Source: Macrostomum lignano
Lineage: Eukaryota
Reading direction: 5' to 3'
Length of the DNA stretch: 64,000 nt
Assembly: GCA_002269645.1 (NCBI GenBank)
Contig: NIVC01000852.1
Location: forward strand, 62,001 to 126,000
Each line of letters opens with the position of its first letter. The stretch's first letter is position 1. Made by a program: the position numbers and the translations under genes. Of this stretch, positions 44,001 through 63,408 are shown piece by piece. Under the pieces are notes generated by a model. It was not told where the DNA came from, did not search any database, and saw only the letters and a list, made by a program, of their open reading frames with translations.

Positions 44001-47000
44001 GCGACGTCTTTCTTACGAGCCGTAATTTTTTACTCTCCATAAAATCCCAACTTCTCCAATTCAGCTGGCAGAAGTTCATGAAGTTCCTGCAGCAGGCGCA
44101 GCAGGCCTACTTCGAAGCGCACCCGGAGGCGCCCAGGCAGGAATCGGCCAAGACCGTCAGTGCGGCGATCAACGCGAGTCTTCAATCGCTCAGCGGGACC
44201 AGCTCGGTAAATACCGCGGGTTCAACATGCGACCTTGTGTGATATTGCTTGTCGTACCAGAACATAATTGACTGCATTAGTTTACTTTGCACCGTCTTGC
44301 AGGCAGCCAGCAGTGCCACCTGGTCCACGGTGACCCTCGCATCAACGGAGAGCGGCGACGAAGTCGTTGAGAATGGCAAAGACAATCGCAAAGACGGTTT
44401 GCGAGGCCAATCGCCAGCTAAGAAGTCGATCGGAATCAACGGGTCCAGGAGTTCGTTTGCTGCTGCTTCTGGAATCGAAGCCGTTCCAACCCCTGCAGTG
44501 GCGCACCTGGGAGGTGGCAGTAAAAATCAACTGGCGATACCGCATCAGCAGCACCCAGCAGCACAGCTGACGCCGTCTCCTATTCAGCATCCGACAGCGA
44601 TGGCAATCAGGCAGCTGGAAATCAAATGCAGATTTGGCGAGCGGCTGATCACGTGTCCAGATGACATACAATGGACCGACGGGGCGACCACGGAGGTGCA
44701 GCCGGAGCCCGTTGACCGGCTCGAACTGGACTGGGTGTAAGGTGGAAGCATAGATGTAGATTAGGGATCGGCAAACTCCTGCCCGAAGGGCCGCATGTGG
44801 TGCACAAAAACTTCAAAACAGCAATCCGGCCCCGCTAAAGGTTTTTGTCTCTTCTCAGCTCCCTTCTCTACAATCTTCTCTCCTTCTCTCTCGTCTCCTC
44901 TCCTCTCCTCTCCTCTCCTCTCCTCTCCTCTCCTCTCCTCTCCTCTCCTCTCCTCTCCTCTCCTCTCCTCTCCTCTCCTCTCGTCTCCTCTCGTCTCCTC
45001 TCCTCTCCTCTCCTTCACTTCTCTCTTCTTTCCTCTCCTCTCCTCTCCTCTCCTCTCCTCTCCTCTCCTCTCCTCTCCTCTCCTCTCCTCTCCTCTCCTC
45101 TCCTCTCCTCTCCTCTCCTCTCGTCTCCTCTCGTCTCCTCTCCTCTCCTCTCCTTCACTTCTCTCTTCTTTCCTCTCCCTTCTCTCCCTTCTCTACAAGC
45201 TCTTCTCTCCCCTCCTATTTCATCTCTTTTCTCCTCTCGTCCTTTTTCCCCTATTTTCGTTTTTCCCTCGTCTCTAAGTTCTCCTATCTCTCTTCTCTAC
45301 TCCCCTCTTCTTTATCCCCTCCTCTGGCTCGCAGCCATGCGCTGGGTTCTCTATCTGTGCCTTAAGGTAAAAAACTTTGCTGACCCCCAGGTGTAGACGC
45401 TGATGGAAAGCCATTGGAAATGTTTGACAAAATTCTCACGTGCCGCACTGGCGATGGCATGACCGAAAAACTCTGTTTCCTCCTCTTAAGCTACGGTTAC
45501 CGGGGCAACGACTGTCGAAAGAACCTGGCATCGCTGCCGAGCACGGGCGAGCTGGTCTACCCCACCGGCCGGCTGGTCGTACTGCTCAGCTACTCACCTG
45601 ACGGAAGCGGCTCAAAGCAGAGGCACTATCGAGAGCATGCTGGCGATGTAAAAAGGTAATTTGATAGCTTGATTTGATAGCTTAGCTTGAGAGAAGAGGG
45701 GAGAGAAGAGGGGAGAGAAGAGGGAAGAGAAGAGGGGAGAGAAGAGGGGAGAGAAGAGAGGAGAGAAGAGAGGAGAGAAGAGGGGAGAGAAGAGAGGAGA
45801 GAAGAGGGGAGAGAAGAGGGAAGAGAAGAGGGGAGAGAAGAGGGGAGAGAAGAGGGGAGAGCAGAGGGGAGAGAAGAGGGGAGAGAAGAGGGGAGAGAAG
45901 AGGGGAGAGAAGAGGGGAGAGAAGAGGGGAGAGAAGAGGAGAGAGAAGAGGGGAGAGAAGAGGGGAGAGAAGAGGGGAGAGAAGAGGGGAGAGCAGAGGG
46001 AAGAGAAGAGGGGAGAGAAGAGGGGAGAGCAGAGGGGAGAGCAGAGGGGAGAGCAGAGGGGAGAGCAGAGGGGAGAGAAGAGGGGAGAGAAGAGGGGAGA
46101 GCAGAGGGAGAGAAGAGGGGAGAGAAGAGGGGAGAGAAGAGGGGAGAGAAGAGGGGAGAGCAGAGGGGAGAGAAGAGGGGAGAGAAGAGGGGAGAGAAGA
46201 GGGGAGAGAAGAGGGGAGAGAAGAGGGGAGAGCAGAGGGGAGAGAAGAGGGAGAGCAGAGGGAAGAGAAGAGGGGAGAGCAGAGGGGAGAGAAGAGGGGA
46301 GAGAAGAGGGGAGAGAAGAGGGGAGAGCAGAGGGGAGAGAAGAGGGGAGAGAAGAGATAAAAAGAGAGTGCTGAAAAGAGACATGAACCTTGAGCGGGCC
46401 GGATTGCCATTGTGAAGTTTCACAAGACCCGAGGGCCAGATGAAGAGGCTTCGCGGGCCGCATGTGACCAGCAGGCCGGAGTTTGCCGACTTCTGTTGTC
46501 GAATGAAACGGGGATGTTATGCGTCACAGTGGATTGAGGACAATGAAATTCATGCCTTTTTTATTCGTAAACTCCATATTTAGACCTCTACTATTGAAGT
46601 GACCTCTACTAGTCCGCTCAGAGAGTGTACATGCCTAAAGATTAGAAAGTCTGGGCCTGCGTACAGTATTAAATCTGCTCAGGAGTCAGCGAAATTGGCA
46701 GAATTGACTCAGGCCTGGTTGCGCGACCATGTCGCCGAAAGCGTTGCGTCATGGTGCAACTTTTATTGAGGTCAAATTTACTATTTTCTCATCGTGTGTT
46801 TCTTTCTTTTCTGCAGCCTCTGTCTGCACCCGGACGGCAACACCATTGCCAGTGGCGGCTGTGGCGGCGGCGTACGCGTTTGGAGCACCGCCACCCTGGA
46901 GACGGACGCCGAACTATGTGACAGCGAAGCCTCTTCTGCAGCTTCGTCAATCGTGTGTCTGGTCTTTCTGGACCCCGATGTAAGCTTTACCTCCTAGAAG

Positions 47001-50000
47001 GCGTAAATTATGGTAAAAATTCCTTTCAGGACAAGATTGACTTGCGGCTCGTAAACTCTAGGCGAGAGATGTTTAATTAGCAATGTCTCTTGCTACTTTG
47101 TGAGCTGTTGTACTCTGAGCACACAAGCTGGGCAAACACAAACAATCATAATGGCTTGCCAATGGAAAGCTACTGACATGATTTCTCTTGAAGTCCTGAG
47201 TAATTGAGTGGGAGCATGAGAAACTTTGTTCAAGTTATTGTTACATTGCAGGCTGCCGAAAAATGAATCATAAGTAAACCATCTACTCACAGAAAAGGAT
47301 TGTTTGCCCTTTGGTCGAACTTGCATAAGAGAAGAAGTACTGTAGCAGTACTTCATGGACTCACTTGAGTCCCCAGCTCAAACTCTGACGCGTGCCGCTC
47401 CTTGTACCGGAAAAACGTGCCGCTGTTTTGTGCATAGATGCCGATCTCCCGACCGCTCCATGAGACAACCGAGCCAGCTCAATCGCATACTCTCAGCTTC
47501 ATCAGCTCACATAGCAACAGACTCAGAGTCAAGCATGAAGTGGCAGCTCGCTCTCGGACTTCTGCTCTGCGCGGCTCTGGCCGCCGCCGTGCCCAGCCAG
47601 CAGGAGGAGGCCGAGACCACCTCGGCTCTGGAGGCCGTGGCCAACCTGGAAGAGTCCGGCCTGACGGAGGAGGGCTTCCAGCAGCTGGCCAAGAAGGGCA
47701 TCCGCATCAGGAAGGTGGTCCGCGTCATCAGGAACATCAAGAAGGTCGCCCACGCCATCGCCAACTGAAGATCTACAAGACAATGAATGACACAACGGAC
47801 CAGACTTTACTAGCTTTCCAACGATTTTCAAAAGGCCTAAAAAGCGCTATGTAATATGATAATATAAAGTTCTAATACCATCTGGAATTTGTCAACTAAG
47901 TACTCTAAAATACACGCGTAACAGGATCCTTCATTTATTAACATTTTTACTATCAATGTGTTGACTAATTTAACAAAAACCAGCGTACAGTCCTGTATAT
48001 GAGCAAAAACCGAGTGTGTTCGTATATAGTCTATAGCGGATCGTCTGTCTTAGCTTAGCATGCCATTTTGATCTCGACTTTAGCAGGAGTGACTTCAATT
48101 TCGGCAAGTCCACGGATGAAAAATTCTTAACCTATCGGCAGCAGTTTGTCTTTGGCCATCAGTTGAAACATTATTAACCTATCGGCAATTTGTCTATGGG
48201 CATCAGTTGAAACATTATTAACCTATCGGCAATTTGTCTATGGGCATCAGTTGAAACATTATTAACCTATCGGCAATTTGTCTATGGGCATCAGTTGAAA
48301 CATTATTAACCTATCGGCAATTTGTCTATGGGCATCAGTTGAAACATTATTAACCTATCGGCAATTTGTCTATGGGCATCAGTTGAAACATTATTAACCT
48401 ATCGGCAGTTTGTCTATGGGCATCAGTTGAAACATTATTAACCTATCGGCAATTTGTCTATGGGCATCAGTTGAAACATTATTAACCTATCGGCAATTTG
48501 TCTATGGGCATCAGTTGAAACATTATTAACCTATCGGCAATTTGTCTATGGGCATCAGTTGAAACATTATTAACCTATCGGCAGTTTGTCTATGGGCATC
48601 AGTTGAAACATTATTAACCTATCGGCAATTTGTCTATGGCCATCAGTTGAAACATTATTAACCTATCGGCAGTTTGTCTATGGGCATCAGTTGAAACATT
48701 ATTAACCTATCGGCAGTTTGTCTATGGCCATCAGCTGAAGCGTGTGCATTAAACTTTGGCGACACAAGTGAACACTGATGCCGAACAGCGTATGTCTGAG
48801 CAGCGAGCGATAACATTCAAATCTATTACTTCTCATGCTGCGTTTCATTTATGTGTGTACAGAAGTTCAGCCTAATATTTTAACTTTAAACTTTGAAATT
48901 TATTTACAGTTAGCTAAGTTTAACAGTCATTTTTTCAACTTTTTTAATCCGTACTTTGTTAAAGTGCAATGAATTCAAACGTCAGTTTAACTTGAAAGGG
49001 ATCTTAACTCTCATTCCTAGATAAACCTTGAATATTCACAGTTTAACTTGGAATTTAACCAGGAATCGGCTTGAATTTTTTAAGCGGGATATCGCTGCAG
49101 GATCGAGAACGCAGTGACAGGGAGACTGTTTTATGTTTTATCTTCAATTCAAACCAGAGCGGTGTGAATATGCAATGAATTATATACCAAGGACGACTTA
49201 AGTAGAAGGACGGGAAACCTCGTTTCTTAGAATTTTTTTGAAGGCACTTTTTTCCGAAAAAATACACTGCGGAGATAGGAAATTTTCATTTTTTCAGCAC
49301 AAAAATTGCTATAACTTTTGATAGGAGGCAGATCCAGTGTTGATCTTTTGATATGTTGTGCCTTTTTTATTGCTCTATCGATATTTATAAAGCTTTCCGT
49401 TCAGAAAATTAGGATTCTATGTTAATTTTTTATTCTACGTATATTTTCATGTGTCTTGTGCTTGAAATACATTAGAATGCCACGGCTTGGCTCTTTGATT
49501 TTATGAGTCTATTTTATCCTTCTTACCTGACTGTATAGCAAATAGTCGTAACATAGATGATAAAATAGATTCATAAAACCAAATATTGGAGCTGTGTCAT
49601 GCCTTTTTGTGATTTTTAGATGCAGGAAATATACGTAGAATAAAAAATTAACATAGAATCCTAATTTTCTGAACGGAAAGCTTTATAAATATCGATAGAG
49701 CAATAAAAAAGGCACAACATATCAAAAGATCAACACTGGATCTGCCTCCTATCAAAAGTTATAGCAATTTTTGTGCTGAAAAAATGAAAATTTCCTATCT
49801 CCGCAGTGTATTTTTTCGGGAAAAAGTGCCTTCAAAAATTTTCTAAGAAACGAGGTTTCCCGTCCTTCTACTTAAGTCGTCCTTGTTATATACATGCAGG
49901 ATTCTTCTGGTTGAGAGTCAGACCAAAATTTCACGCAGTTAGATCTACTTTATTCTTTAGTTTATTTGGTCGGCCTCGAACCATCCACCATCAACATTAT

Positions 50001-53000
50001 GTAATTCCGCATTCATTCCACCATCGCAACAGCGCCTGATATCCGTGGACGACAGCTCGCCTCAACCGCAGCTGAAGCTCTGGAGCCTCGAGTCCCGATC
50101 GATTCTCGCCATGGTTCGACCGTCTGCAGCTGTTGTCTGCGACGTCACTGTGAGCCCCGGCGTCGACGGCGCGTTCGTGACGGTCGGGCGCGGCCACATC
50201 GCCTGGTGGCGTCATTGGGATCGCGATGGCGATGGTAAGAAACAGCTGCAGCTGGTCCGAGAGGGTGACGTGACTGCCCTGTCGGCGAGGTACGTGGTTA
50301 GCGCGGTCTACTGCACCGATGGCCTGCTGGTCACTGGCGACTCAAGCGGAGGAGTTGCCGTGTGGGATGACGCCGATCCGGAGAACGAGAGTAGCGGCTG
50401 TCGAATAATACGACTGGGAAGCCAGCTGCATCAGGTGTGAAGCATTTAATTTTCGGTTTTGTATTTATATTTTAGGAGTTTATATGCTTCTATATTAGAC
50501 AGAAGACATGAGCCTTTTTACAATAAAAGCAATGTTCACAATTGTTGAGCAGCCGAAGAAACTTCTACTGAGTGACCGGTGGTCCGAGGAGTAAGGAACT
50601 CATAAGAAGCTCGAAGTAGGGAATTCGAGCAGTGCTCAATCCTGATGTGTTCCTTATTACCAGTCCTCAACTGTAATCAAGGAACAATCACTTCTAGCTA
50701 CTTGCTAGGCAACCCAGTTATCAGATAAAGGTATCACTTACCTTTAGTTGTATCCTCCGTTGAGTACTCTTTTTAGATCTCGCTGTAGGTCTAGTCACCA
50801 GTAGTTCTGGTCTCAGATGATCCGTAGATCAGGCGCCTTGTCTCTTCTTTGGTTCTGGTCCTGGTTCTTCTTGGACTTTCGATGAAGTTCCTTCCGGCCG
50901 GTATCTGCAGTCAGGACCAATCAGAGGCCTCGTATCAACAATGGGTACCCTGCGCCGAACAGCGGTTCGAGTTAAGCCTCCTTCTTCTAGCAGTGCCTCT
51001 ATGCACTCTAGGTATAGCTCCGGAAACCACTGATAGTCTTCTAAGATCTATCAGTGGCAGTCCTTCTGGAGACTGCAACCAGTAGAGTCTAAACAGACTC
51101 AAGAGTCTCAACAGACTCAACTAAACTCAAGTAACACTAGACTTGAGCGAGACGTCTCTAACACAACGGGCGCAAATAAGGAAGGCTTACCGCAACAACT
51201 CGACCGAGTCTCGATTGACTTGGTGATCAGGAAGTCCTCCTAAGGCTTCCTCTTCGGAGCTTCTCCTCTCGTCGGGAGTTGGCTCCTGGTCCGCTTCGGA
51301 CCGCTTGTATTTATAGGCGAATTTGCAGTCCAAAATAGCATTACAACTCATGTGTTGCGCTAAAAGGGTAACATAACTTATTGCGTATTATACAGTAACA
51401 TGGTTAATTGTTAAGTTTCAGTTGCGCATGCGTGCACTTACCTACTTACAGTAGCATCCTATGATTAACTTCTTTTACCTTTTTTACGGGAGGTAGAACA
51501 CTCTACAATCCGTTGACCCGGATACGAACGAAGGCACACGCTCCCACAGGATGTACATCGGCCCAGACTATCTCATAATCGGGCAGTGTACTCGTCATAC
51601 GCACTCGGCCTTTGTGTTTGGCCCTCAATACTGTGGACTATAAGGGAATTTTCCTAGGACTTGGACAGGCTCAAAGACGGAAAATACAATCTACAGCTAC
51701 TATTACCTGCCTATCTGAACAGGGTCCCGTGTTCACCTTACTGGAGCTCCTATTCAATGACCAGAACTGGATTCTCAGCGGCGGTCGCGATGGGCGCCTG
51801 TTAGTCTGGCGCGCATCCGACATGCCACCAACAATGAGTCCTGATGAAAATCGCCAAGAAACTGGCTCGTCAACTTCGTTAAAAAAACAAAATGAATCGT
51901 CAGCCGTGAGCAGTCTGGCCCTGCCAGAGGAAGCTGCAGGCAACGCCGGAATTCGTTGCGTCTGCGCCTGCAAGACTGCTGGTGGCGCAGAAAAAGACGC
52001 TGCCGATAACGCAAGTCAGCAGGACCAGGACATTGGCGGCATTCTGCTGGCGCTTGGCACCACAACCAATGCCATCTTTCTGTGCCGTCTCCCAGCGCCA
52101 GGAGCACGTGAAACCGAAGTAACTTCTGGAGACGACTCAGAGCATACTCCGGAGAACCCTCTGGCGGAGGCGCAGCTGCTTCCAGATCCACTGACTGCCG
52201 GGCACTACGATCGGCTGCGCAGCCTCGGCGGCCTGACCAGCCACCCGTCTGTCTTCGTCACGGCCGGCTACGACAGCCAGGTGCGAATGTACAATGCCGA
52301 GTCCCACCGGTGTCTGCACACTGCCGTTCTACCGGTAAGTGCTGAGCAGCTTTAACTTCTTTATTATTGATTGTAATCAGTGTCCAAGACTTACTGGGAC
52401 TTCCTTCCTTCCTTCCTTCCTTCCTTCCTTCCTTCCTTCCTTCCTTCCTTCCTTCCTTCCTTCCTTCCTTCCTTCCTCCTTCCTTCCTTCCTCCCTTCCT
52501 TCCTTCCTACCTTCCTTCCTTCCTTCCTCCCTTCCTTTCTTCCTTCCTTCCTTCCTTCCTTCCTTCCTTCCTTCCTTCCTTCCTTCCTTCCTTCCTTCCT
52601 TCCTTCCTTCCTTCCTTCCTTCCTTCCTTCCTTCCTTCCTTCCTTCCTTCCTTCCTTCCTTCCTTCCTTCCTTCCTTCCTTCCTTCCTTCCTTCCTTCCT
52701 TCCTTCCTTCCTTCCTTCCTTCCTTCCTTCCTTCCTTCCTTCCTTCCTTCCTTCCTTCCTTCCTTCCTTCCTTCCTTCCTTCCTTCCTCCCTACCTTCCT
52801 TCCTTCCTTCCTTCCTTCCTTCCTTCCTTCCTTCCTTCCTTCCTTCCTTCCTTCCTTCCTTCCTTCCTTCCTTCCTCCCTTCCTTCCTTCCTACCTTCCT
52901 TCCTCCCTTCCTTCCTTCCTTCCTTCCTTCCTCCCTTCCTTCCTTCCTACCTTCCTTCCTCCCTTCCTTCCTTCCTTCCTTCCTTCCTTCCTTCCTTCCT

Positions 53001-56000
53001 TCCTTCCTTCCTTCCTCCCTTCCTTCCTTCCTTCCTTCCTTCCTTCCTTCCTTCCTTCCTTCCTTCCTTCCTTCCTTCCTTCCTTCCTTCCTTCCTTCCT
53101 TCCTTCCTTCCTTCCTTCCTTCCTTCCTTCCTTCCTTCCTTCCTTCCTTCCTTCCTTCCTTCCTTCCTTCCTTCAATTCATCCTAAAATGGAACCCACCA
53201 AAACCTACTGTATTTTCTGTTTGTGTGGCCGGCCTCAGCACTATTACACGATCTTATCTTCAGAAAAAGTGCATCTCTAGCGTTCTGTGGCACAGCAGCG
53301 GAACGCTGATCCTGGGAACTAGAACTGGTCAGCTGATCATTCTGCAGCGGTCCGGCTCCGTTCTGTGCCAGGTTTTCAAACGGAGGACGGCCAGACACAA
53401 AATCACTGCAATCGCAACCGCTCCCTGTGAGTTTCAACTTGGCGTTGATGTTTCCTTTGTTTGAAGCTTTGTAAGCAGCTTATCGGCTGAAGAGGAGGCA
53501 GACCCAATGTTCATATTTGTAAAGCTTTCTGCTTATAAAATTAGGATTGTACGGGTAGGTTTAACTTTTTTGTCCAACGTACATATTTTGTGACTAAAAA
53601 TAATAAAAATGACACAATTTAATTCATTCGTATTATGAATCTTTTTATTCATTATTAGCTTATTGATTATGTTACTAAATTAATTTTTAACTGCAATAGT
53701 TCAAGCATTCAGCCAAATGAGACAACACTGACTAGGCTAAGTTTTTTGTCATAAATATGGTCTATAATAGCCCGATTAAAACATTATATTCTACGTTACC
53801 CTCGTATGAAGGCTCACTACTGATGAGTGTGAAGACTATAAAATTATCATTTATTATTAGTTTTAAAATTTGAACATTGGATCTGCCTCCTATCAAAAGT
53901 AATTAAAAATTTTTGCTGAAAAATGAAAATCTCCATTCTCCAAAAACGTATTTCGAGCGTATTTGGTAAAAACTGCCTCCTAAAATTTTATATAAACAAT
54001 CCGCCCCTTCAAATTTTGACATTGACAACTGCAAAATTCTATAATAATGTTATACTAACCAACAGGGGTCGTAGCCTAGCGATTAGAGCGATGGACTCAC
54101 GACTTGAAGGTCGGGTGTTCGATTCCCGATCCCACTGAGAACAATCTGTGTCCTTGAGCAAGACACTTAACTCTGCATTGCTTCAGTTCACCCAGCTGTA
54201 AAATGGGTGCCAGCATTAGCTGGGGCAATTGAGGCTGTGTGGCGACCCCCCAGTCCTTGGACTGAACAGCCGTACGCAGCCTTCAGATGCGCCGCGCAAT
54301 TGCTGCGGCAGAGCTGTCGGTTGCACATCTACCTATTAGGGCAGGTTTAATCAATTATTATTATTTAATAACCCACAGAAGTGAATCCTGACTACCCTAC
54401 AGCTTTTGACAATTTCTTAAGTCACATTAATTGACCAGACGAAGTAGATCAATCGAAAAACGCACTTGCTTGTTGAAGAGTGCATAAACTGAGTGGATGA
54501 AAAGTTTGCTTTTCCCACTCCAGCCGGCGAGATGGTTGCCGTTGGAGACGCCCGCGGCAGGATCTACTTTATCGAGCAGCGCAGGCATCAGCCTCAGCTG
54601 TCAGCTTCTCTGACGCGGCCAACTTCTACGGAGCAGGACAGGTCCGATGCTCCACAGTCATCGGCTGCCGAGCTTCGCAGCAGCTCCTGGCTCGTCGTTG
54701 GTGAGATTTGCGTCCTCCGTCGGCCGTCGAGGCCATCGACTTTGCCAGCGACCGATTCGAGGGCTCCCTGCTGCTGCGTGCCAGCAACCGTATCGCCGAG
54801 CTGGCTTTCTGTGAGCTTTAAAAGCTTTGTAAACTGTTGAAGAGTGACGAATGCTGTTGGCTTGCAGCCTAGTAGTCAGAGCGGGGATCGAACCCCAAGG
54901 TCGGGGGTTCGATTCCCGATCCCACTAAGAACAATTTGTGTCCTTGAGCAAGACACTGAACGCTGCATTGCTTCAGTTCACCCAGCTGTAAAATGGGCGT
55001 GCCAACATTAGCTGGGGTAATTGAGGCTGTGTGGCGACCCCCTTCCCAGTCCTTGGACTGAACAGCCGTACGCAACCTTCAGATGCGCCGCGCAATAGCT
55101 GCGGCTGAGCTGTCGGTTGCACATCTGGCCATGAGGGCAGGTGTAATCAATAATAATTATTATTACGAGCCATTTTTTTGTAAACTACGAAAATTCGATG
55201 TACATTCGACGCTGGGTCGGAGCGCTAACCCAACGGTTCTGTACAACTTCTTACAAACAATGACCCCTAAATACATTCGGAAGCGAGGGATGTTTAACAA
55301 ATAAAATCTTTACTTTATCAACATTCTTGAGGCCAAGTTTCTAAACGAAAACTGTTCTCCTTTCCAAAGTTCTGTTGGGACTAAGACTAAGACTATTGAG
55401 ATGGGTTGCAGCTAATGGAAGTTGAGTCAAATTGTCTGCCCCGACTTAAGTAATATGAAAATTATTGACTTTGACAGGCGACGCAACAAACTTTCACCTG
55501 ACCACTGGGGAGGAGCGATTTCGCAATGTGACCTGGAGTACCCATAGCTGCCTATGTTGCTACTATTCTGTTGGTAAGAGATCGAGCACTTTATAATCTG
55601 TGCGATAATTGGTGCTTGATCGGACTCGTTCAAATGGATTTATTACAGTAATATTCAATTCTCCGTATAGGTGTGTGGAACTCAGAGGTGGCCGCCAAGA
55701 GAAACATCACAGCAATGGACGCCTGTCCGTCACGGAACCTGCTGGCGGTGGGATTGGACACGGGCCAAGTGCTGCTGTACAGGATGCCCTGCATCAGTTC
55801 GAAAGTAAGCGGCATCTACGGCCATTAATGTTGGATGCTGTTGGGTAGAGTTGGTTGGTGTCCGGTTGATGTTGGATGCTGTTGGGTAGAATTGGTTGGT
55901 GTGCAGTTGATGTTGGATGCTGTTGGGTAGAATTGGTTGGTGTGCAGTTGATGTTGGATGGTGTTGGGTAGAATTGGTTGGTGTGCAGTTGATGTTGGAT

Positions 56001-57922
56001 GCTGTTGGGTAGAATTGGTTGGTGTGCAGTTGATGTTGGATGCTGTTGGGTAGAGATGGTTGGTGTGCAGTTGATGTTGGATGCTGTTGGGTAGAATTGG
56101 TTGGTGTGCAGTTGATGTTGGATGCTGTTGGGTAGAGATGGTTGGTGTGCAGTTGATGTTGGATGCTGTTGGGTAGAATTGGTTGGTGTGCAGTTGATGT
56201 TGGATGCTGTTGGGTAGAATTGGTTGGTGTGCAGTTGATGTTGGATGCTGTTGGGTAGAGATGGTTGGTGTGCAGTTGATGTTGGATGCTGTTGGGTAGA
56301 GTTGGTTGGTGTGCAGTTGATGTTGGATGCTGTTGGGTAGAATTGGTTGGTGTCCGGTTGATGTTGGATGGTGTTGGGTAGAGTTGGTTGGTGTCCAGTT
56401 GATGTTGGATGATGTTGGATAGATTTGATTGGTGTCCAGTTGATGTTGGATGCTGTTGGATAGATTTGATTGGTGTCCGGTTGATGTTGGATGCTGTTGG
56501 GTAGAGTTGGTTGGTGTCCGGTTGATGTTGGATGCTGTTGGGTAGAGTTGGTTGGTGTCCGGTTGATGTTGGATGCTGTTGGGTAGAGTTAGTTGGTGTG
56601 CAGTTGATGTTGGATGCTGTTGGGTAGAATTGGTTGGTGTGCAGTTGATGTTGGATGCTGTTGGGTAGAGTTGGTTGGTGTCCAGTTGATGTTGGATGCT
56701 GTTGGATAGATTTGATTGGTGTCCGGTTGATGTTGGATGCTGTTAGGTAGAGTTGGTTGGTGTCCGGTTGATGTTGGATGCTGTTGGGTAGAGTTGGTTG
56801 GTGTCCGGTTGATGTTGGATGCTGTTGGGTAGAGTTGGTTGGTGTGCAGTTGATGTTGGATGCTGTTGGGTAGAATTGGTTGGTGTCCGGTTGATGTTGG
56901 ATGGTGTTGGGTAGAGTTGGTTGGTGTCCAGTTGATGTTGGATGCTGTTGGATAGATTTGATTGGTGTCCAGTTGATGTTGGATGCTGTTGGATAGATTT
57001 GATTGGTGTCCGGTTGATGTTGGATGGTGTTGGGTAGAGTTGGTTGGTGTCCGGTTGATGTTGGATGCTGTTGGGTAGAGTTGGTTGGTGTCCGGTTGAT
57101 GTTGGATGGTGTTGGGTAGAGTTGGTTGGTGTCCGGTTGATGTTGGATGCTGTTGGGTAGAGTTGGTTGGTGTCCGGTTGATGTTGGATGCTGTTGGGTA
57201 GAGTTGGTTGGTGTCCGGTTGATGTTGGATGGTGTTGGGTAGAGTTGGTTGGTGTCCGGTTGATGTTGGATGCTGTTGGGTAGAGTTAGTTGGTGTGCAG
57301 TTGATGTTGGATGCTGTTGGGTAGAATTGGTTGGTGTCCGGTTGATGTTGGATGGTGTTGGGTAGAGTTGGTTGGTGTCCAGTTGATGTTGGATGCTGTT
57401 GGATAGATTTGATTGGTGTCCGGTTGATGTTGGATGCTGTTGGGTAGAGTTGGTTGGTGTCCGGTTGATGTTGGATGCTGTTGGGTAGAGTTGGTTGGTG
57501 TCCGGTTGATGGTTGATGCTTTTGGATTGAGTTGGTTGGTGTCCGGTTGATGGTTGATGCTGTTGGGAAGAGTTGGTTGGTGTCCGGTTGATGGTTGATG
57601 CTTTTGGATAGAGTTGGTTGGTGTCCGGTTGATGGTTGATGCTTTTGGGTAGAGTTGGTTGGTGTCCGGTTGATGGTTGATGCTTTTGGATAGAGTTGGT
57701 TGGTGTCCGGTTGATGTTGGATGCTGCTTGGCAGATCATAGCTGCAATGATTGATGCAAGCATGCGTGTCATCGCTACAAACGTTTTCGCTTTCCGCAGG
57801 CTCAATTTCGAGTGTTCCACGGTCCGTGCAAAATTTCCAGCTTGAAATTCCTATCAGAAGGCACTCGTCTCGTGGCTGTGGGCGGCTCAGAAGCCTGCAT
57901 AATGCAGTGGAATGTGCTGTGA
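41037..57922 (+). CDS. Echinoderm microtubule-associated protein-like (EML) HELP/WD40 protein with N-terminal EF-hand-like region, about 1170 aa
   Basis: Exons 41037-41163, 42969-43525, 43873-43970, 44065-44206, 44303-44736, 45491-45655, 46817-46979, 50033-50434, 51723-52334, 53264-53426, 54524-54810 (needs +1 nt), 55478-55573, 55671-55804 and 57800-57922. The HELP motif LELDWVYGYRGNDCRKNL...QRHYREHAGDVKSLCLHPDG and the C-terminus GVW...LLYRMPC...LVAVGGSEACIMQWNVL* are diagnostic of EML proteins. Confidence 0.88.
41378..41660 (+). mobile_element. tRNA-derived CORE-like SINE, copy 3
   Basis: Same family sequence. Confidence 0.85.
41850..42020. repeat. (GGTA)n microsatellite
   Basis: Direct reading. 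Confidence 0.9.
42805..42912. repeat. Degenerate telomere-like (CCCTAA/CCCTA) tract
   Basis: CCCTAACCCTACCCTAAAA...CCCTAACC. Confidence 0.6.
43530..43800. repeat. 27/28-bp minisatellite (TTCAGACTGCATGTCACTTACAGTCCG)
   Basis: About 10 copies filling an EML intron. Confidence 0.9.
44880..45300. repeat. (CTCCT)n / CT-rich repeat
   Basis: Direct reading; intronic. Confidence 0.95.
45690..46360. repeat. 12-bp GA-rich repeat (GAGAAGAGGGGA)
   Basis: Direct reading; intronic. Confidence 0.95.
47409..47445 (+). promoter_or_regulatory. Putative promoter block of peptide gene 1 (GGAAAAACGTGCCG plus TATA-like CATAGAT)
   Basis: Conserved upstream of the paralogue at 59883-59915 (GGAAAAACGTGCCG...CATAAAT). 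Confidence 0.5.
47535..47768 (+). CDS. 77-aa secreted prepropeptide, candidate antimicrobial/host-defence peptide precursor (nested in an EML intron)
   Basis: MKWQLALGLLLCAALAAA signal peptide, Glu-rich pro-region, KK site, then GIRIRKVVRVIRNIKKVAHAIAN*. High GC3 codon usage like the neighbouring exons; two paralogues in the window. Confidence 0.8.
   Translation: MKWQLALGLLLCAALAAAVPSQQEEAETTSALEAVANLEESGLTEEGFQQLAKKGIRIRKVVRVIRNIKKVAHAIAN
48130..48735. repeat. 44-bp minisatellite (TTAACCTATCGGCAATTTGTCTATGGGCATCAGTTGAAACATTA)
   Basis: About 13 contiguous copies with no spacers. Confidence 0.95.
49181..49892. mobile_element. About 710-bp foldback/MITE-like palindrome with about 265-bp near-perfect arms
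   Basis: 49181-49445 is the reverse complement of 49628-49892; TATATA at both ends; the arms are homologous to the interior of the 18104-18622 element. Confidence 0.85.
50543..51507 (-). mobile_element. Probable solo LTR / retroelement remnant (about 965 bp)
   Basis: TGT...ACA termini, a minus-strand CCTATAAATAC TATA-like box near 51310, and composition unlike the flanking intron. No clean TSD and no recognisable protein. Confidence 0.35.
52400..53175. repeat. (CCTT)n microsatellite
   Basis: Direct reading; intronic. Confidence 0.95.
53490..53990. mobile_element. Degenerate third member of the foldback/MITE family
   Basis: AGGAGGCAGACCCAATGTTC at about 53493 and its inverse GAACATTGGATCTGCCTCCT at about 53871-53890; both match the 18 kb and 49 kb elements. 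Confidence 0.6.
54065..54370 (+). mobile_element. tRNA-derived CORE-like SINE, copy 4
   Basis: Same family sequence. Confidence 0.85.
54859..55165 (+). mobile_element. tRNA-derived CORE-like SINE, copy 5
   Basis: Same family sequence with a diverged tRNA head. Confidence 0.85.
55830..57725. repeat. 41-bp minisatellite (GTTGATGTTGGATGCTGTTGGGTAGAGTTGGTTGGTGTCCG)
   Basis: About 45 copies in the last EML intron (55805-57799). Confidence 0.95.
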
Positions 57923-58488
57923 AACTGCAATCTGTGCCTTTTCTAATAAAATTTACGTTAAAACGCTTCCTTCCGTTAAATTTCTGAATTTTGACGCAAA
58001 CTGTGCACAAATCTATGCAAGCACCTGAGTTGCTAGCAAAGCTTCACGTAAAAAAGTAGCTCGTATACCTACGAGATGAAAAGCAAAAAGGTGCATGGTC
58101 ATGTTGGGTCGTATAGATGAACTTCTTGGATCATTTCTGGTTAGACATGGGTTGAATATCAATCAAGATACAAATTAGTGTTGCTACAAAGAAATTGGTA
58201 GGTAGTCTTAGAAGTCACACCGTCGAAAAACTGCTTTGAGAGATTAACGTAATAACACAATTGTACTCCATCTTATAGTGACTTTATACATTGACTTCCA
58301 GATTCAAAATTTTGACATAAACTTACGTTTGCTCTGATAGTTTTTACGCAGAACCGTCAGGTAACACAAAAACTGAGGCAAGGCAATCGCAATGAAGGTG
58401 AGGTAAACAATGAATTGTGTGAGAAAGTATCAATCACTCTTTGCCCAACACAAAAGTACAAACAAGTTCGTTGCCAAAGTCCAAGAAA

Positions 58489-58618
58489 GTCAATCGCAGA
58501 CTCTCAGGTTCATCAGCTCGCCCAGCAACAGACTCTGGCCAAGAAGGGCATCCGCATCAGGAAGATGGTCCGCGTCAACAGGAACATCAAGAAAGTCGCC
58601 CATGCCATGGCCAACTGA
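58489..58618 (+). pseudogene. Truncated paralogue of the 47535 peptide gene (signal and pro-region deleted)
   Basis: The 5'UTR-like TCAATCGCAGACTCTCAG..TTCATCAGC..CAACAGACTC joins directly to LAKKGIRIRKMVRVNRNIKKVAHAMAN*; no signal-peptide ATG. Confidence 0.75.
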
Positions 58619-59980
58619 AGACCCTCGGAAGTCTGACAGTTCGCTAAAACCTGAATGTGTCACAATACTTTCGAACCACGAGCTCCTTGGCTAAAATACA
58701 AGAGCGTAAATAAATAATATAACAAGTTGATTTCATTTCAGAGTTTATTTCGTGCGGCAATATCAGCTAATAGCTACTATATAGTAATATTATGCGATTA
58801 TAGTACTCGTAGTTTTCTCGTGGAAGTCAAAGTCTTTTTAAACTGTCGACATAATCATGACGTCATCATAATTACAAGAGGGCTGCGGGCGACATCGGTT
58901 CCACAACCAGCGCTGAGACTTTCTAATCGTCAGGGATGTACACTTGGCCTTGGGGGCTGGCGAAGTTTAATTCAGAAGTTCAGACATTTGGTTTGAATTT
59001 TGGGGCGCTTTCATTAGTTTCACTTTGCCGAAAAGCACTCTCTTTCACTAGGCCGAAAGTTCACATTTGCCGAAAAATCATTTTAGCAGCGTCCTTACTA
59101 TGGTCGAAAGGGGGTGTGAACTTAAGCCTCCAAAATGGAACCGCAAGCAGTGACGATTTCTCTGCACCAGTTTCTTTATTTTGACCTCAGTGTTACTCTG
59201 CTACCAAAGTGGCAGCACGATATGGTCACTCAGTTTTTTTGTATTGAATATTTTCGACATTTCTGACTTCATTTGGGGGTGAACTCTGATTGCTTATTAT
59301 TTTCATTGCATTTTCTGTCTCAGTCGGATGGACTTTTAAGTTATAGAGTGCTCGTATGTTTTTATGGCTCCTTTGAAAGCATGCAGATTTGCCTGGATTC
59401 CGATTCGTAGAATATGCATGGCTCTAAGATTCACTTTAATGTTATCATGTTAGTTTCGGCCTAGTGAAGGAAGATGCTTTCGGCGAAGTGAAATTTCGGC
59501 CTCGGCGCTACAGTGCCCATAAAAGCTGACAACATCCTATTGCGATAATAAATTTTCCAATGAATTGCGTGTATAACGTCCTTCTAATTTAGTTGTTAAT
59601 GTTACAATCCTATTGTAGAAAAAATTCTTTGTTTAACTTCTGCCTCAAACGTATTCGTTAATAAAGTAGTGCATACAACAACGCTTGGGCTGGAACTAAC
59701 TTTAGATAGGGCAAATAGTGAGACAGTGGCAGCTTCATCAAACAGTCTATTGAGTAGATTTTGAGCAAAGTTTACCTAGCTAAGATTGACACTGCTTGGC
59801 CATTAAATTGCTGTAAAGTGCAATAAAAGTCAAGCCCTTAACACGTGAAAGTGTCGAGGTCAAACAGAGCATTCCAAGCTCAGGAAAAACGTGCCGAATT
59901 TTGAGCATAAATGCAGACAATTTAGCCAGCTCAATCGCAGACTCTCAGCTTCATCAGCAGGCAGCCCAACAGACTCAATC

Positions 59981-60215
59981 ATGAAGTGGCAGCTCGCTCT
60001 CGGATTTCTGCTCTGCGCAGCCCTGGCCGCGGCCGCTCCCAACCAATAGCGACTCAAACCAGGAGGAGACTGAGAACTTGGCCGCTATGCGGGCCATGTC
60101 CGACGTGGACGCGTCCGCCCTGACAGGGGAGAGAGGCCTCTTCGGCATGGTGATCGGAACTGCCAAGGTTGTTGGCAAAATTGCCAAGGCTGTCAAGGCG
60201 GCGCGCAATTCTTGA
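59981..60215 (+). pseudogene. Third peptide precursor paralogue with a 1-bp frameshift (pseudogene or sequencing error)
   Basis: 235 nt versus 234 nt for copy 1. Removing one C at 60038-60040 gives MKWQLALGFLLCAALAAAAPTNSDSNQEETENLAAMRAMSDVDASALTGER-GLFGMVIGTAKVVGKIAKAVKAARNS*. Confidence 0.75.
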
Positions 60216-60711
60216 GAGAACTTTTGAGGGATGAGTTTTCCCGGACTGTGTTTTTTCGAATGCGGTTCTTTTCGGGCAAAGTACAAAATAAACAACAGTT
60301 CTGCCTACTTATTGGTCAATAGTAGTAGTAGAGTATTACGCACAGGTATGGAAATTTCTGGGAATAGTTAGAGCTTCAAATGATTGCTAGTTGTTCAAAA
60401 GTTGAATTAGAAGAAAAAATCAAACGGTCTCTATATAGAAAATCTGTTTAACAATCTTCATTCAGAAATATATTTACATTTTTACAAAAAAATTGAAAAG
60501 CCTGCAGTGGAAAATGCAGATTGTCTTGGCTTGCTTTTATTGCCTTTCTAAGCTGGATGTAAAGAACGGGCCAAAAAGTTTCAATTAGGAAAATTTCTCC
60601 AATTAAGAAATCTGTGGTTAAATTTGTAGATGCATGCGAAATTGAGCAAATCAGTGACATCACAGGTGTCAGCAGTAGGTACTTTGTACAGTTTTGGTTA
60701 ACCTTCCTGGT

Positions 60712-61610
60712 TGGAATCTTTCCGGTTGGAATCCTTCCAGTTGGAATCCTTCCGGTTGGAATCCTTATGGTTGGAATCCCTCCGGTTGAAATCCTTCCAG
60801 TTGGAATCCTTCCGGTTGGAATCCTTCCAGTTGGAATCCTTCCGGTTGGAATCCTTCCAGTTGGAATCCTTCCGGTTGGAATCCTTCCAGTTGGAATCCT
60901 TCCAGTTGGAATCCTTCCGGTTGGAATCCTTCCGGTTGGAATCCTTCCGGTTGGAATCCTTCCAGTTGGAATCCTTCCAGTTGGAATCCTTCCGGTTGAA
61001 ATCCTTCCGGTTGGAATCCTTCCGGTTGGAATCCTTCCGGTTGGAATCTTTCCGGTTGGAATCCTTCCAGTTGGAATCCTTCCAGTTGGAATCCTTCCGG
61101 TTGGAATCCTTCCGGTTGGAATCCTTCCGGTTGGAATCCTTCCAGTTGGAATCCTTCCAGTTGGAATCCTTCCGGTTGGAATCCTTCCGGTTGGAATCCT
61201 TCCGGTTGGAATCTTTCCGGTTGGAATCCTTCCAGTTGGAATCCTTCCAGTTGGAATCCTTCCAGTTGGAATCCTTCCGGTTGGAATCCTTCCGGTTGGA
61301 ATCCTTCCAGTTGGAATCCTTCCAGTTGGAATCCTTCCGGTTGAAATCCTTCCAGTTGGAATCCTTCCGGTTGGAATCCTTCTAGTTGGAATCCTTCCGG
61401 TTGGAATCCTTCCGGTTGGAATCCTTCCAGTTGGAATCCTTCCAGTTGGAATCCTTCCGGTTGAAATCCTTCCAGTTGGAATCCTTCCGGTTGGAATCCT
61501 TCTAGTTGGAATCCTTCCGGTTGGAATCCTTCCGGTTGGAATCCTTCCGGTTGAAATCCTTCCGGTTGGAATCCTTCCGGTTGGAATCCTTCCGGTTGGA
61601 ATCCTTCCGG
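60712..61610. repeat. 15-bp minisatellite (TTCCGGTTGGAATCC)
   Basis: About 60 copies, ending about 30 bp from the kinase stop codon. Confidence 0.95.
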
Positions 61611-61642
61611 GTGGCAACATTCCCGGTTTGAGAATGATAGAA

Positions 61643-63408
<1,766 letters not shown>

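Follow-up and report, generated by a model that had tools for sequence, protein, structure and literature searches.

A 64,000-nucleotide (nt) stretch of the genome of the flatworm Macrostomum lignano (GenBank assembly GCA_002269645.1, contig NIVC01000852.1, positions 62,001 to 126,000 of the forward strand), called the window below, contains three copies of a gene for a short secretory precursor: one intact gene (copy 1), one truncated relic (copy 2) and one frameshifted gene (copy 3). Judged by sequence, these copies belong to a multigene family restricted to Macrostomum, in which dozens of intronless and clustered genes have a common promoter, 5′ untranslated region (5′UTR) and signal peptide (MKWQLALGLLLCAALA). 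We consider it probable, by a modest measure, that the family encodes secreted, charge-neutralised precursors of membrane-active host-defence peptides. With the window come two tail types that public protein sets lack, as well as examples of gene decay in the family.

Copies in the window were sought by BLASTN with the copy 1 locus and by nhmmer with a profile of the family promoter, 5′UTR and signal region. In the BLASTN search, copy 1 matched 59915-60131 (74% identity, 223 nt, E = 4e-38), 58490-58535 (89% identity, 46 nt, E = 1.6e-11) and 58535-58621 (94% identity, 87 nt, E = 9e-34), which gives three related copies in the window and no further ones; the family profile matched at 47398-47594 and 59879-60040 only. 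These searches bear out the three related copies that had been reported in the initial annotation, made from the letters of the window alone. The accompanying description as a three-gene cluster holds for the number of copies, but only copy 1 is intact, copy 2 being a relic and copy 3 frameshifted.

Copy 1 has the family layout in full, with 77 codons, a propiece of net charge -8, a KK site and a tail of charge +7. Its parts are as follows.

47409-47441, + strand: promoter module, with GGAAAAACGTGCC at 47409-47421 and the TATA-like GCATAGATGC at 47432-47441; in the alignment, every family gene has this element upstream
47463-47534, + strand: conserved 5′UTR, AGCCAGCTCAATCGCATACTCTCAGCTTCATCAGC...CAACAGACTC
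47535-47768, + strand: uninterrupted open reading frame (ORF) of 77 amino acids (aa), protein MKWQLALGLLLCAALAAAVPSQQEEAETTSALEAVANLEESGLTEEGFQQLAKKGIRIRKVVRVIRNIKKVAHAIAN
47535-47588, + strand: signal peptide MKWQLALGLLLCAALAAA, residues 1-18
47589-47696, + strand: acidic propiece VPSQQEEAETTSALEAVANLEESGLTEEGFQQLA, net charge -8, with the dibasic KK at 47691-47696
47697-47768, + strand: predicted mature peptide GIRIRKVVRVIRNIKKVAHAIAN, 23 aa, charge +7, with the stop codon at 47766-47768

Signal cleavage is predicted after A-A-A by the -3/-1 rule, and the propiece has 34 residues and no cysteine. Measured against the signal criterion of the family, MKWQ(L/F)ALGLLLC(A/V)ALA..., copies 1 and 3 match at 17-18 of 18 positions, and copy 2 has no signal. 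The signal peptides of copies 1 and 3 differ at one of 18 residues, so that the near identity noted initially is correct. Compared with its paralogues, the copy 1 signal shows 1 non-synonymous and 3-6 synonymous differences, which points to recent constraint.

The initial annotation had proposed a search for more members, and such members were readily found. A phmmer search with the copy 1 protein recovered ten M. lignano proteins and nothing else, and a profile search of 1.84 billion representative proteins gave 11 real matches, all of which are M. lignano gene models (including BOX15_Mlig024774, Mlig026085, Mlig010792 and others) except for one 929-nt Logan contig. The paralogue set used here consists of nine loci (L001-L009) with 14 intact genes, all of them intronless and most of them paired 3-4 kb apart in tandem or divergent orientation. 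Megablast of the window against seven of these loci gave a single match, of 92 nt. Broken copies occur among the clustered genes, and this organisation fits the birth-and-death evolution that had been suggested. For example, locus L003 contains two identical 80-aa precursors with the tail WRRRRRFRWRKAIRVAGKVAKAVL, at 9964-10206 (-) and 14312-14554 (+), facing away from each other and about 4 kb apart; by sequence, the pair arose by recent inverted duplication and represents the paralogue type that is nearest to the window genes. The Logan contig (SRR31628392_42504, locus L008), which is genomic, carries the promoter module and a 33-residue Pro/Arg-repeat tail FLRVRLPRVRMPRVRLPRVRLPRLRVRFRWSKK; all other family members found are from the M. 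lignano reference assembly. A Pfam scan of the precursors gave no real domain, and a match of the P0001 protein to PF22991 was rejected as the product of a duplicated stretch in a chimeric gene model. At that locus (L002, 10001-12935; P0001; BOX15_Mlig001477g4 in file S5 of Irvine et al. 2023, PLoS Pathog, PMC10414684), the gene models fuse two adjacent copies by apparent splicing, with the propiece duplicated, which reflects either an error of annotation or a transcript that reads through two tandem paralogues and is spliced between them.

Part of the family has been catalogued in silico already, so that it is not wholly new. File S5 of Irvine et al. lists family paralogues as predicted antimicrobial peptide (AMP)-like peptides, with scores of 100% for fAMP-LP-142 (BOX15_Mlig024774g1/g2), 91% for fAMP-LP-71 (Mlig026130g1-3), 73-91% for fAMP-LP-116 and 82% for the 'Ungrouped' peptide 544; the first three groups were filtered out there as 'Same genome' and the last as 'Ungrouped' (PMC10414684). 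We identify these peptides as members of the same family by their MKWQ(L/F)A... signal, acidic propiece and cationic tail. Particularly, fAMP-LP-142 is the paralogue type nearest to the window genes (L003), with 83-89% nucleotide identity in the 5′UTR and signal and the tail motif GK[VI]AKAV in common. In that file the relatives are spread over unrelated group numbers and are not described as one family, and the window peptides are absent from the list. The main text of the same paper makes no mention of Macrostomum; it describes the flatworm AMP repertoire as previously undescribed and the classic lophotrochozoan AMP families as missing in flatworms (PMC10414684). The initial remark that the family was not recognised as described in flatworms is therefore right for the text of papers, none of which describes the family, but not for supplementary data, where its paralogues are listed.

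Across the family, the precursor begins with an 18-residue signal and continues with a propiece, which has 31-37 residues and a net charge between -4 and -16, then a basic site and a C-terminal tail; the coding sequence is intronless and about 60-105 codons long. The basic site is KK or KKK in most paralogues and K or LK in a few. Conservation falls steeply along the precursor. Residues 1-12 of the signal are invariant in a 10-protein alignment, and mean pairwise identity among 17 distinct members drops from 0.80 in the signal to 0.42 in the propiece and 0.24 in the tail. The combination of conserved signal, acidic spacer and variable cationic tail, initially noticed from two copies, is thus stronger in the whole family than in the window. 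The regional comparison of nonsynonymous and synonymous substitution rates (dN/dS) that had been proposed along with it gives the same order: by the Nei-Gojobori method, in comparisons involving window genes, dN/dS lies at 0.04-0.15 in the signal and at about 1-2.7 in the propiece, and the tail is saturated; these values rest on 18-38 codons per region and are only indicative. In addition, the negative charge of the propiece tracks the positive charge of the tail (Spearman -0.81, n = 16, not corrected for phylogeny), as exemplified by copy 1 (-8/+7) and L003 (-11/+11).

The conserved part of these genes extends beyond the coding sequence. The module GGAAAMACGTGCC (CGGAAA(A/C)ACGTGCC), followed after 8-16 nt by GCATAAAT (the CATAAAT box), lies about 110 nt 5′ of the ATG at every promoter-bearing family gene. 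The composite promoter pattern has 14 matches in the nine family loci, one per gene, and the window contains exactly two instances of the motif GGAAAMACGTGCY, one each at copies 1 and 3 (2 of 2 promoter-bearing copies), against 0 expected. The ACGTG/CACGTG core resembles a binding site of basic helix-loop-helix (bHLH) or bHLH-PAS proteins, and it could be the common regulatory switch of the family. Downstream of the module, the 5′UTR plus signal of copy 1 is 82% identical to that of copy 3 over 137 nt, and its 5′UTR core shows 89% identity with copy 2 and 83-86% with the two paralogues of L003. The sharing of 5′UTR sequence among the copies had been recognised initially, but not its full extent, because the shared sequence reaches upstream into the promoter module at 47409 and 59883. 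A scan for poly(A) signals was uninformative, most paralogues having no canonical hexamer within 250 nt.

In contrast to the signal, the tails range from 8 to 47 aa and from a charge of 0 to +14, and they belong to different structural classes. Among them are short alternating peptides of 9-11 residues ending in Gly, such as FVRVRVRLG and IFRVRVRIG, and further types are WLRVRARVRVGSRRRSRSG, GFHVHFHG, a Cys-pair peptide (P0013), a 33-mer Pro/Arg repeat (P0012) and Tyr/Arg-rich tails with predicted peptides of 29-38 residues. Many of the short tails end in Gly, which would serve as an amide donor, whereas the window peptides have no C-terminal Gly. The charges of +7 and +5 initially assigned to the tails of copies 1 and 3 were correct when recomputed, but the accompanying statement that these tails are unrelated does not stand. 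The tails of copy 3 and L003 have the motif KVVGKIAKAV / RVAGKVAKAV in common (P = 2e-4 vs shuffles), and the copy 1 tail is marginally similar to both (P = 0.03-0.04 vs shuffles); in addition, its IRIRKVVRVIR lines up with the VRVRVR core that the short paralogues have. By these comparisons, the tails are strongly diverged homologues.

Amphipathicity is found in the helical form of the long tails and, strongly, in the beta-strand form of the short VRVRVR tails (z = 2.2-2.7 at 170 degrees). For the copy 1 tail (+7), the helical hydrophobic moment is 0.54 at 100 degrees (z = 1.8 vs shuffles) and 0.72 at 110 degrees, and for the copy 3 tail (+5), it is 0.27 (z = 0.9 vs shuffles). With the family alignment, AlphaFold2 placed helices in copy 1 at residues 3-17, 28-38 and 45-76, at low to moderate confidence (mean predicted local distance difference test score 62, about 66-75 over the tail). 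The long tails of the window and L003 are probably helical. Searches of PDB sequences with the tails of copies 1 and 3 gave nothing meaningful.

Copy 3 retains its promoter and signal, and its reading frame is broken shortly after the signal.

59883-59914, + strand: promoter module, with GGAAAAACGTGCC at 59883-59895 and an intact TATA box GCATAAATGC at 59905-59914
59915-59980, + strand: 5′UTR, similar to copy 1 and the family
59981-60049, + strand: signal MKWQLALGFLLCAALAAA and start of the propiece, with the ATG at 59981 and an in-frame TAG at 60047-60049
60050-60215, + strand: remainder in the +1 frame, ...NQEETENLAAMRAMSDVDASALTGER-GLFGMVIGTAKVVGKIAKAVKAARNS*; the initially proposed peptide is 60135-60212, with the stop at 60213-60215

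The spacer between promoter and 5′UTR is 21 nt shorter than in the other family genes. The ATG frame of copy 3 runs for 22 codons before the TAG, and the C-terminal part in the +1 frame reads ...LTGERGLFGMVIGTAKVVGKIAKAVKAARNS. Removal of any single base within 60037-60047, a stretch of short homopolymers (CCCAACCAA), restores a 77-aa ORF; the one-base excess could be an assembly error. Even then copy 3 has the family layout with its KK site lost, since at the family position AKK has become AKV. The corrected length of 77 aa that the initial annotation gave to both copies is accurate for copy 1 as assembled, but for copy 3 it is obtained only with one base removed, because a one-base error was assumed. 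Similarly, the basic cleavage site proposed for both is present as KK in copy 1 but not in copy 3, where a cut after a lone R (GER|GLFG) is a guess. A small intron as the cause of the interruption was rejected, as there is no GT...AG and removal of one base restores the frame. A search with the frame-repaired protein gave no matches, and no intact gene of the copy 3 type is known. In another family member, P0017 (BOX15_Mlig001660g1), the N-terminus HEMAVRSRTPAVRALAAA resembles a +1-frame reading of the signal DNA, which in the window copies gives EVAARSRTSALR; frameshifts in the family, real or from assembly, are thus not confined to copy 3.

Copy 2 consists of two joined remnants.

58490-58535, + strand: 5′UTR remnant of 46 nt, 89% identical to copy 1 at 47479-47524
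58535-58618, + strand: remnant of the last 27 codons and stop, LAKK-GIRIRKMVRVNRNIKKVAHAMAN*, 94% identical to copy 1 at 47685-47771

The 5′UTR piece is joined straight to the tail codons, about 160 nt with the ATG, signal and spacer being missing, and copy 2 is therefore a relic. Its tail differs from that of copy 1 by three amino-acid changes. No family promoter was found for copy 2, the DNA upstream of it being unrelated in the promoter alignment of family genes, and its frame is open from 58316 with no in-frame Met ahead of the peptide. We rejected a retrocopy or a splice variant as its origin, since the junction is not GT-AG, the 3′UTR bears no relation to the one in copy 1 and an in-frame ATG is lacking.

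From these features, the following mode of action can be proposed. Each functional gene would be driven by its own short promoter, composed of the GGAAAMACGTGCC element and the CATAAAT box, and the near-invariant 18-residue signal would route the precursor to the secretory pathway. The acidic propiece may neutralise the cationic tail during synthesis and storage, after which a prohormone-convertase-type protease would cut at the basic site, and the released amphipathic cationic peptide (for copy 1, the +7 and predicted helical GIRIRKVVRVIRNIKKVAHAIAN) would act on anionic microbial membranes as a secreted host-defence effector. The repertoire would arise by repeated duplication, tail divergence and loss of copies, with the secretory cassette of promoter, 5′UTR and signal kept constant by purifying selection, gene conversion or both. 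The analysis demonstrates the gene structures, membership of the family, the gradient of conservation, the coupling of charges and the defects of copies 2 and 3; we infer where the signal is cut, that the precursors are processed and secreted, that the window copies are expressed and that the peptides are antimicrobial.

The host-defence function is favoured for several reasons. First, the genes combine a conserved secretory cassette with a charge-coupled acidic propiece, a basic site and, frequently, a terminal Gly. Second, the spread of the tails is like that of AMP classes, the helical, Pro/Arg-rich, Cys-pair, Tyr/Arg-rich and His-rich types mirroring known structural classes of AMPs. Third, the family is lineage-restricted and has expanded in tandem with broken copies. 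Fourth, independent AMP predictors gave the paralogues in file S5 scores of 73-100% (PMC10414684). A wider proposal, which we put forward as a working idea that falls somewhat short of probable, is that the genes form an undescribed flatworm host-defence superfamily, in which one conserved promoter/5′UTR/signal/propiece cassette, possibly switched through ACGTG by bHLH/bHLH-PAS-type factors, carries at least six classes of cationic peptide (helical, beta-strand VR-repeat amides, Pro/Arg-rich, Tyr/Arg-rich, His-rich and disulfide-loop).

Several observations weigh against a host-defence function or against its operation in the window. Of the window copies, copy 2 is dead and copy 3 is frameshifted and without a KK site. 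In copy 1, the family CATAAAT has changed to CATAGAT, the sole exception among the 16 promoter-bearing family genes examined, and the promoter is possibly weakened; moreover, neither an exact look-up in public assemblies nor protein searches found any record of the copy 1 product in public gene sets. That absence says little about expression, because the neighbouring gene for an EML-like (echinoderm microtubule-associated protein-like) protein is also missing from the protein databases and the stretch seems to be unannotated. The helical amphipathicity of the window tails is moderate, with z = 1.8 for copy 1 and 0.9 for copy 3, where magainin, dermaseptin and temporin, calculated in the same way, reach 2.4-3.1, the structure model is of low confidence, and the dN/dS and charge results carry the limits given with them. 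Some tails are barely cationic (GFHVHFHG, 0; AVYKPNYYKD, +1), and the short paralogues (KK-FVRVRVRL-Gly) pass as amidated neuropeptides too. Our literature search found no transcript, peptide or activity data for any family member, and in no paper text the peptide sequences, gene identifiers or a description of the family. Four flatworm peptides were synthesised by Irvine et al., and none of them is from this family (PMC10414684).

Three other explanations were considered. The one that survives best, although we think it unlikely, is that the products are secreted membrane-active or polyanion-binding effectors with another target, acting as seminal-fluid or prostate proteins, as predator-deterrent or prey/diatom-lysing toxins, or in digestion, mucus or adhesion. 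The secretion signal, the rapid divergence of the tails, the lineage restriction and the tandem expansion fit such roles equally well and do not identify the target, and fast-evolving secreted proteins that are confined to one lineage are a typical product of the reproductive glands of Macrostomum. However, nothing found here ties the family to reproductive or adhesive tissue, the range of tails (Pro/Arg-rich, amphipathic helix and Arg/aromatic-rich) is the classic AMP spectrum, and independent AMP predictors gave the paralogues high scores.

It is rather more doubtful that the window locus is wholly non-functional, with all three copies decaying on the 'death' side of birth-and-death. The absence of promoter, ATG and signal in copy 2, the premature TAG, frameshift and missing KK of copy 3, which has no similar protein on record, and the TATA mutation of copy 1, the only one of 16, together with the absence of its product from public protein sets, would all be expected of a dying locus. 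Against this, copy 1 has a complete ORF, a perfect signal under recent constraint, the KK site and the -8/+7 balance; its absence from annotation is uninformative, as the EML-like neighbour is missing too; and the defect of copy 3 is a single base among short homopolymers that could be an assembly error, P0017 being shifted in frame as well. Finally, it is very unlikely that the precursors encode neuropeptides or hormones, cut at KK by a convertase, amidated from Gly and acting on a receptor: the short paralogues do follow the grammar of neuropeptide processing (KK/KKK, 8-10 residues, C-terminal Gly), and their predicted ends -VRLamide, -VRIamide and -VRFamide recall flatworm GFVRIamide (PMC13026224) and RFamides, but conservation is reversed, with signal and propiece kept and the supposed ligand hypervariable (8-47 aa, 0 to +14), each precursor ends in one peptide where repeats of it would be usual for neuropeptides, recent tandem paralogues number in the dozens, acidic charge tracks basic charge, and the window peptides have no C-terminal Gly.

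A secreted host-defence function can also be compared with known precursor families. Frog preprodermaseptins have a conserved signal, an acidic propiece, a basic site and a hypervariable cationic peptide that is often amidated via a terminal Gly, and they form a birth-and-death multigene family in which the secretory cassette is the most conserved part; this dermaseptin/temporin-type superfamily was reportedly described by Vanhoye, Nicolas, Amiche and co-workers. The Macrostomum family has the same order of parts, which is a resemblance in design and not membership. No sequence similarity was found (the profile search of 1.84 billion representatives gave Macrostomum only, and there were no PDB relatives). 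Frog preprodermaseptin genes have an intron directly after the signal-coding exon and a KR processing site, unlike the Macrostomum genes (window and 14 paralogues), which are intronless with KK/KKK. The frog-type precursor design invoked in the initial annotation therefore holds for the order of parts, but not for sequence or gene structure, and the family is of independent origin, a new example of a well-known kind of gene family.

The logic of one conserved pro-region with structurally unrelated cationic 'warheads' is the same in cathelicidins. In mammalian defensin precursors, an anionic propiece charge-balances the cationic peptide, and a similar balance is seen in the Macrostomum family (rho = -0.81). 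Compared with these two groups, the Macrostomum precursors have no cathelin domain (about 100 aa, four cysteines), no defensin cysteine framework and no Pfam match, and their propiece of about 35 residues is predicted to be helical or disordered. The myticalins of mussels are likewise a lophotrochozoan, lineage-restricted multigene family; they are linear and cationic, combine a conserved signal with a mature region that is hypervariable, and include Pro/Arg-rich members, but the order is opposite, with the mature peptide central and a conserved anionic propeptide C-terminal (Leoni et al. 2017, PMC5577615), whereas in Macrostomum the propiece comes first and the precursor ends with the peptide. 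Myticalin homologues were not found in flatworms by Irvine et al. (PMC10414684). Flatworm npp-1/GFVRIamide precursors have dibasic cleavage and Gly amidation in common with the family, whose short paralogues end in -VR[LIF]-Gly. Unlike npp and FLP precursors, the Macrostomum precursors contain a single, strongly cationic and hypervariable peptide, amidation is expected for the short paralogues only, and the window peptides have 23-26 residues without a terminal Gly.

If the superfamily proposal is true, no endogenous linear AMP system of a free-living flatworm would have been characterised before this one. A large lineage-specific family with such a frog-like precursor would be a clear convergence on the strategy of a conserved secretory cassette with a hypervariable cationic peptide. 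It would also offer a tractable model for the regulation of such a repertoire through a shared promoter element, as well as for its diversification and loss, in a transparent animal amenable to RNA interference and transgenesis. In addition, the family is a source of short and unusual peptides that could be screened for antimicrobial action, among them VRVRVR-amides of 8-10 residues and Tyr/Arg-rich peptides.

The peptide genes lie in and next to a larger gene, and other genes are found further away in the window.

46794-46997, 50045-50440, 51612-52355, 53186-53464, 55673-55828 and 57797-57919 (approximate), + strand: coding exons of the EML-like WD-repeat gene, with colinear matches to Pfam Beta-prop_EML and Beta-prop_EML_2
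61643-62089, - strand: protein kinase exon, C-terminal half of the domain (Pfam Pkinase, E = 4e-33), on the opposite strand to the peptide genes
33578-34624 and 35171-36244, + strand: long ORF with DUF4485 (E = 1.5e-18) and, further 3′, an Ala/Glu/Arg-rich coiled-coil-like ORF, in DNA of 64% GC

The EML-like exons span more than 11 kb, the one at 57797-57919 encoding the last propeller blade. Since they lie on the + strand on either side of copy 1, copy 1 is within an intron of the EML-like gene and on the same strand, and copies 2 and 3 are 0.6-2 kb downstream of the last EML-like coding exon. A 131-aa exon of the EML-like gene found no protein at E <= 1e-10 among 5.8 billion sequences, and the gene appears to be unannotated or very divergent. 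Tandem mini- and microsatellite arrays are unusually dense in this part of the window, at 45689-46356 (12-nt unit, x56), 48117-48739 (44-nt, x14, just 3′ of copy 1), 52400-53174 (CTTC, x194), 55828-57731 (41-nt, x46, in the last EML intron), 60702-61614 (15-nt, x61) and 62944-63269 (ACAG, x82), and they account for the long spurious ORFs on both strands. The DUF4485 ORF and the coiled-coil-like ORF probably form one gene, which is unrelated to the peptide genes.

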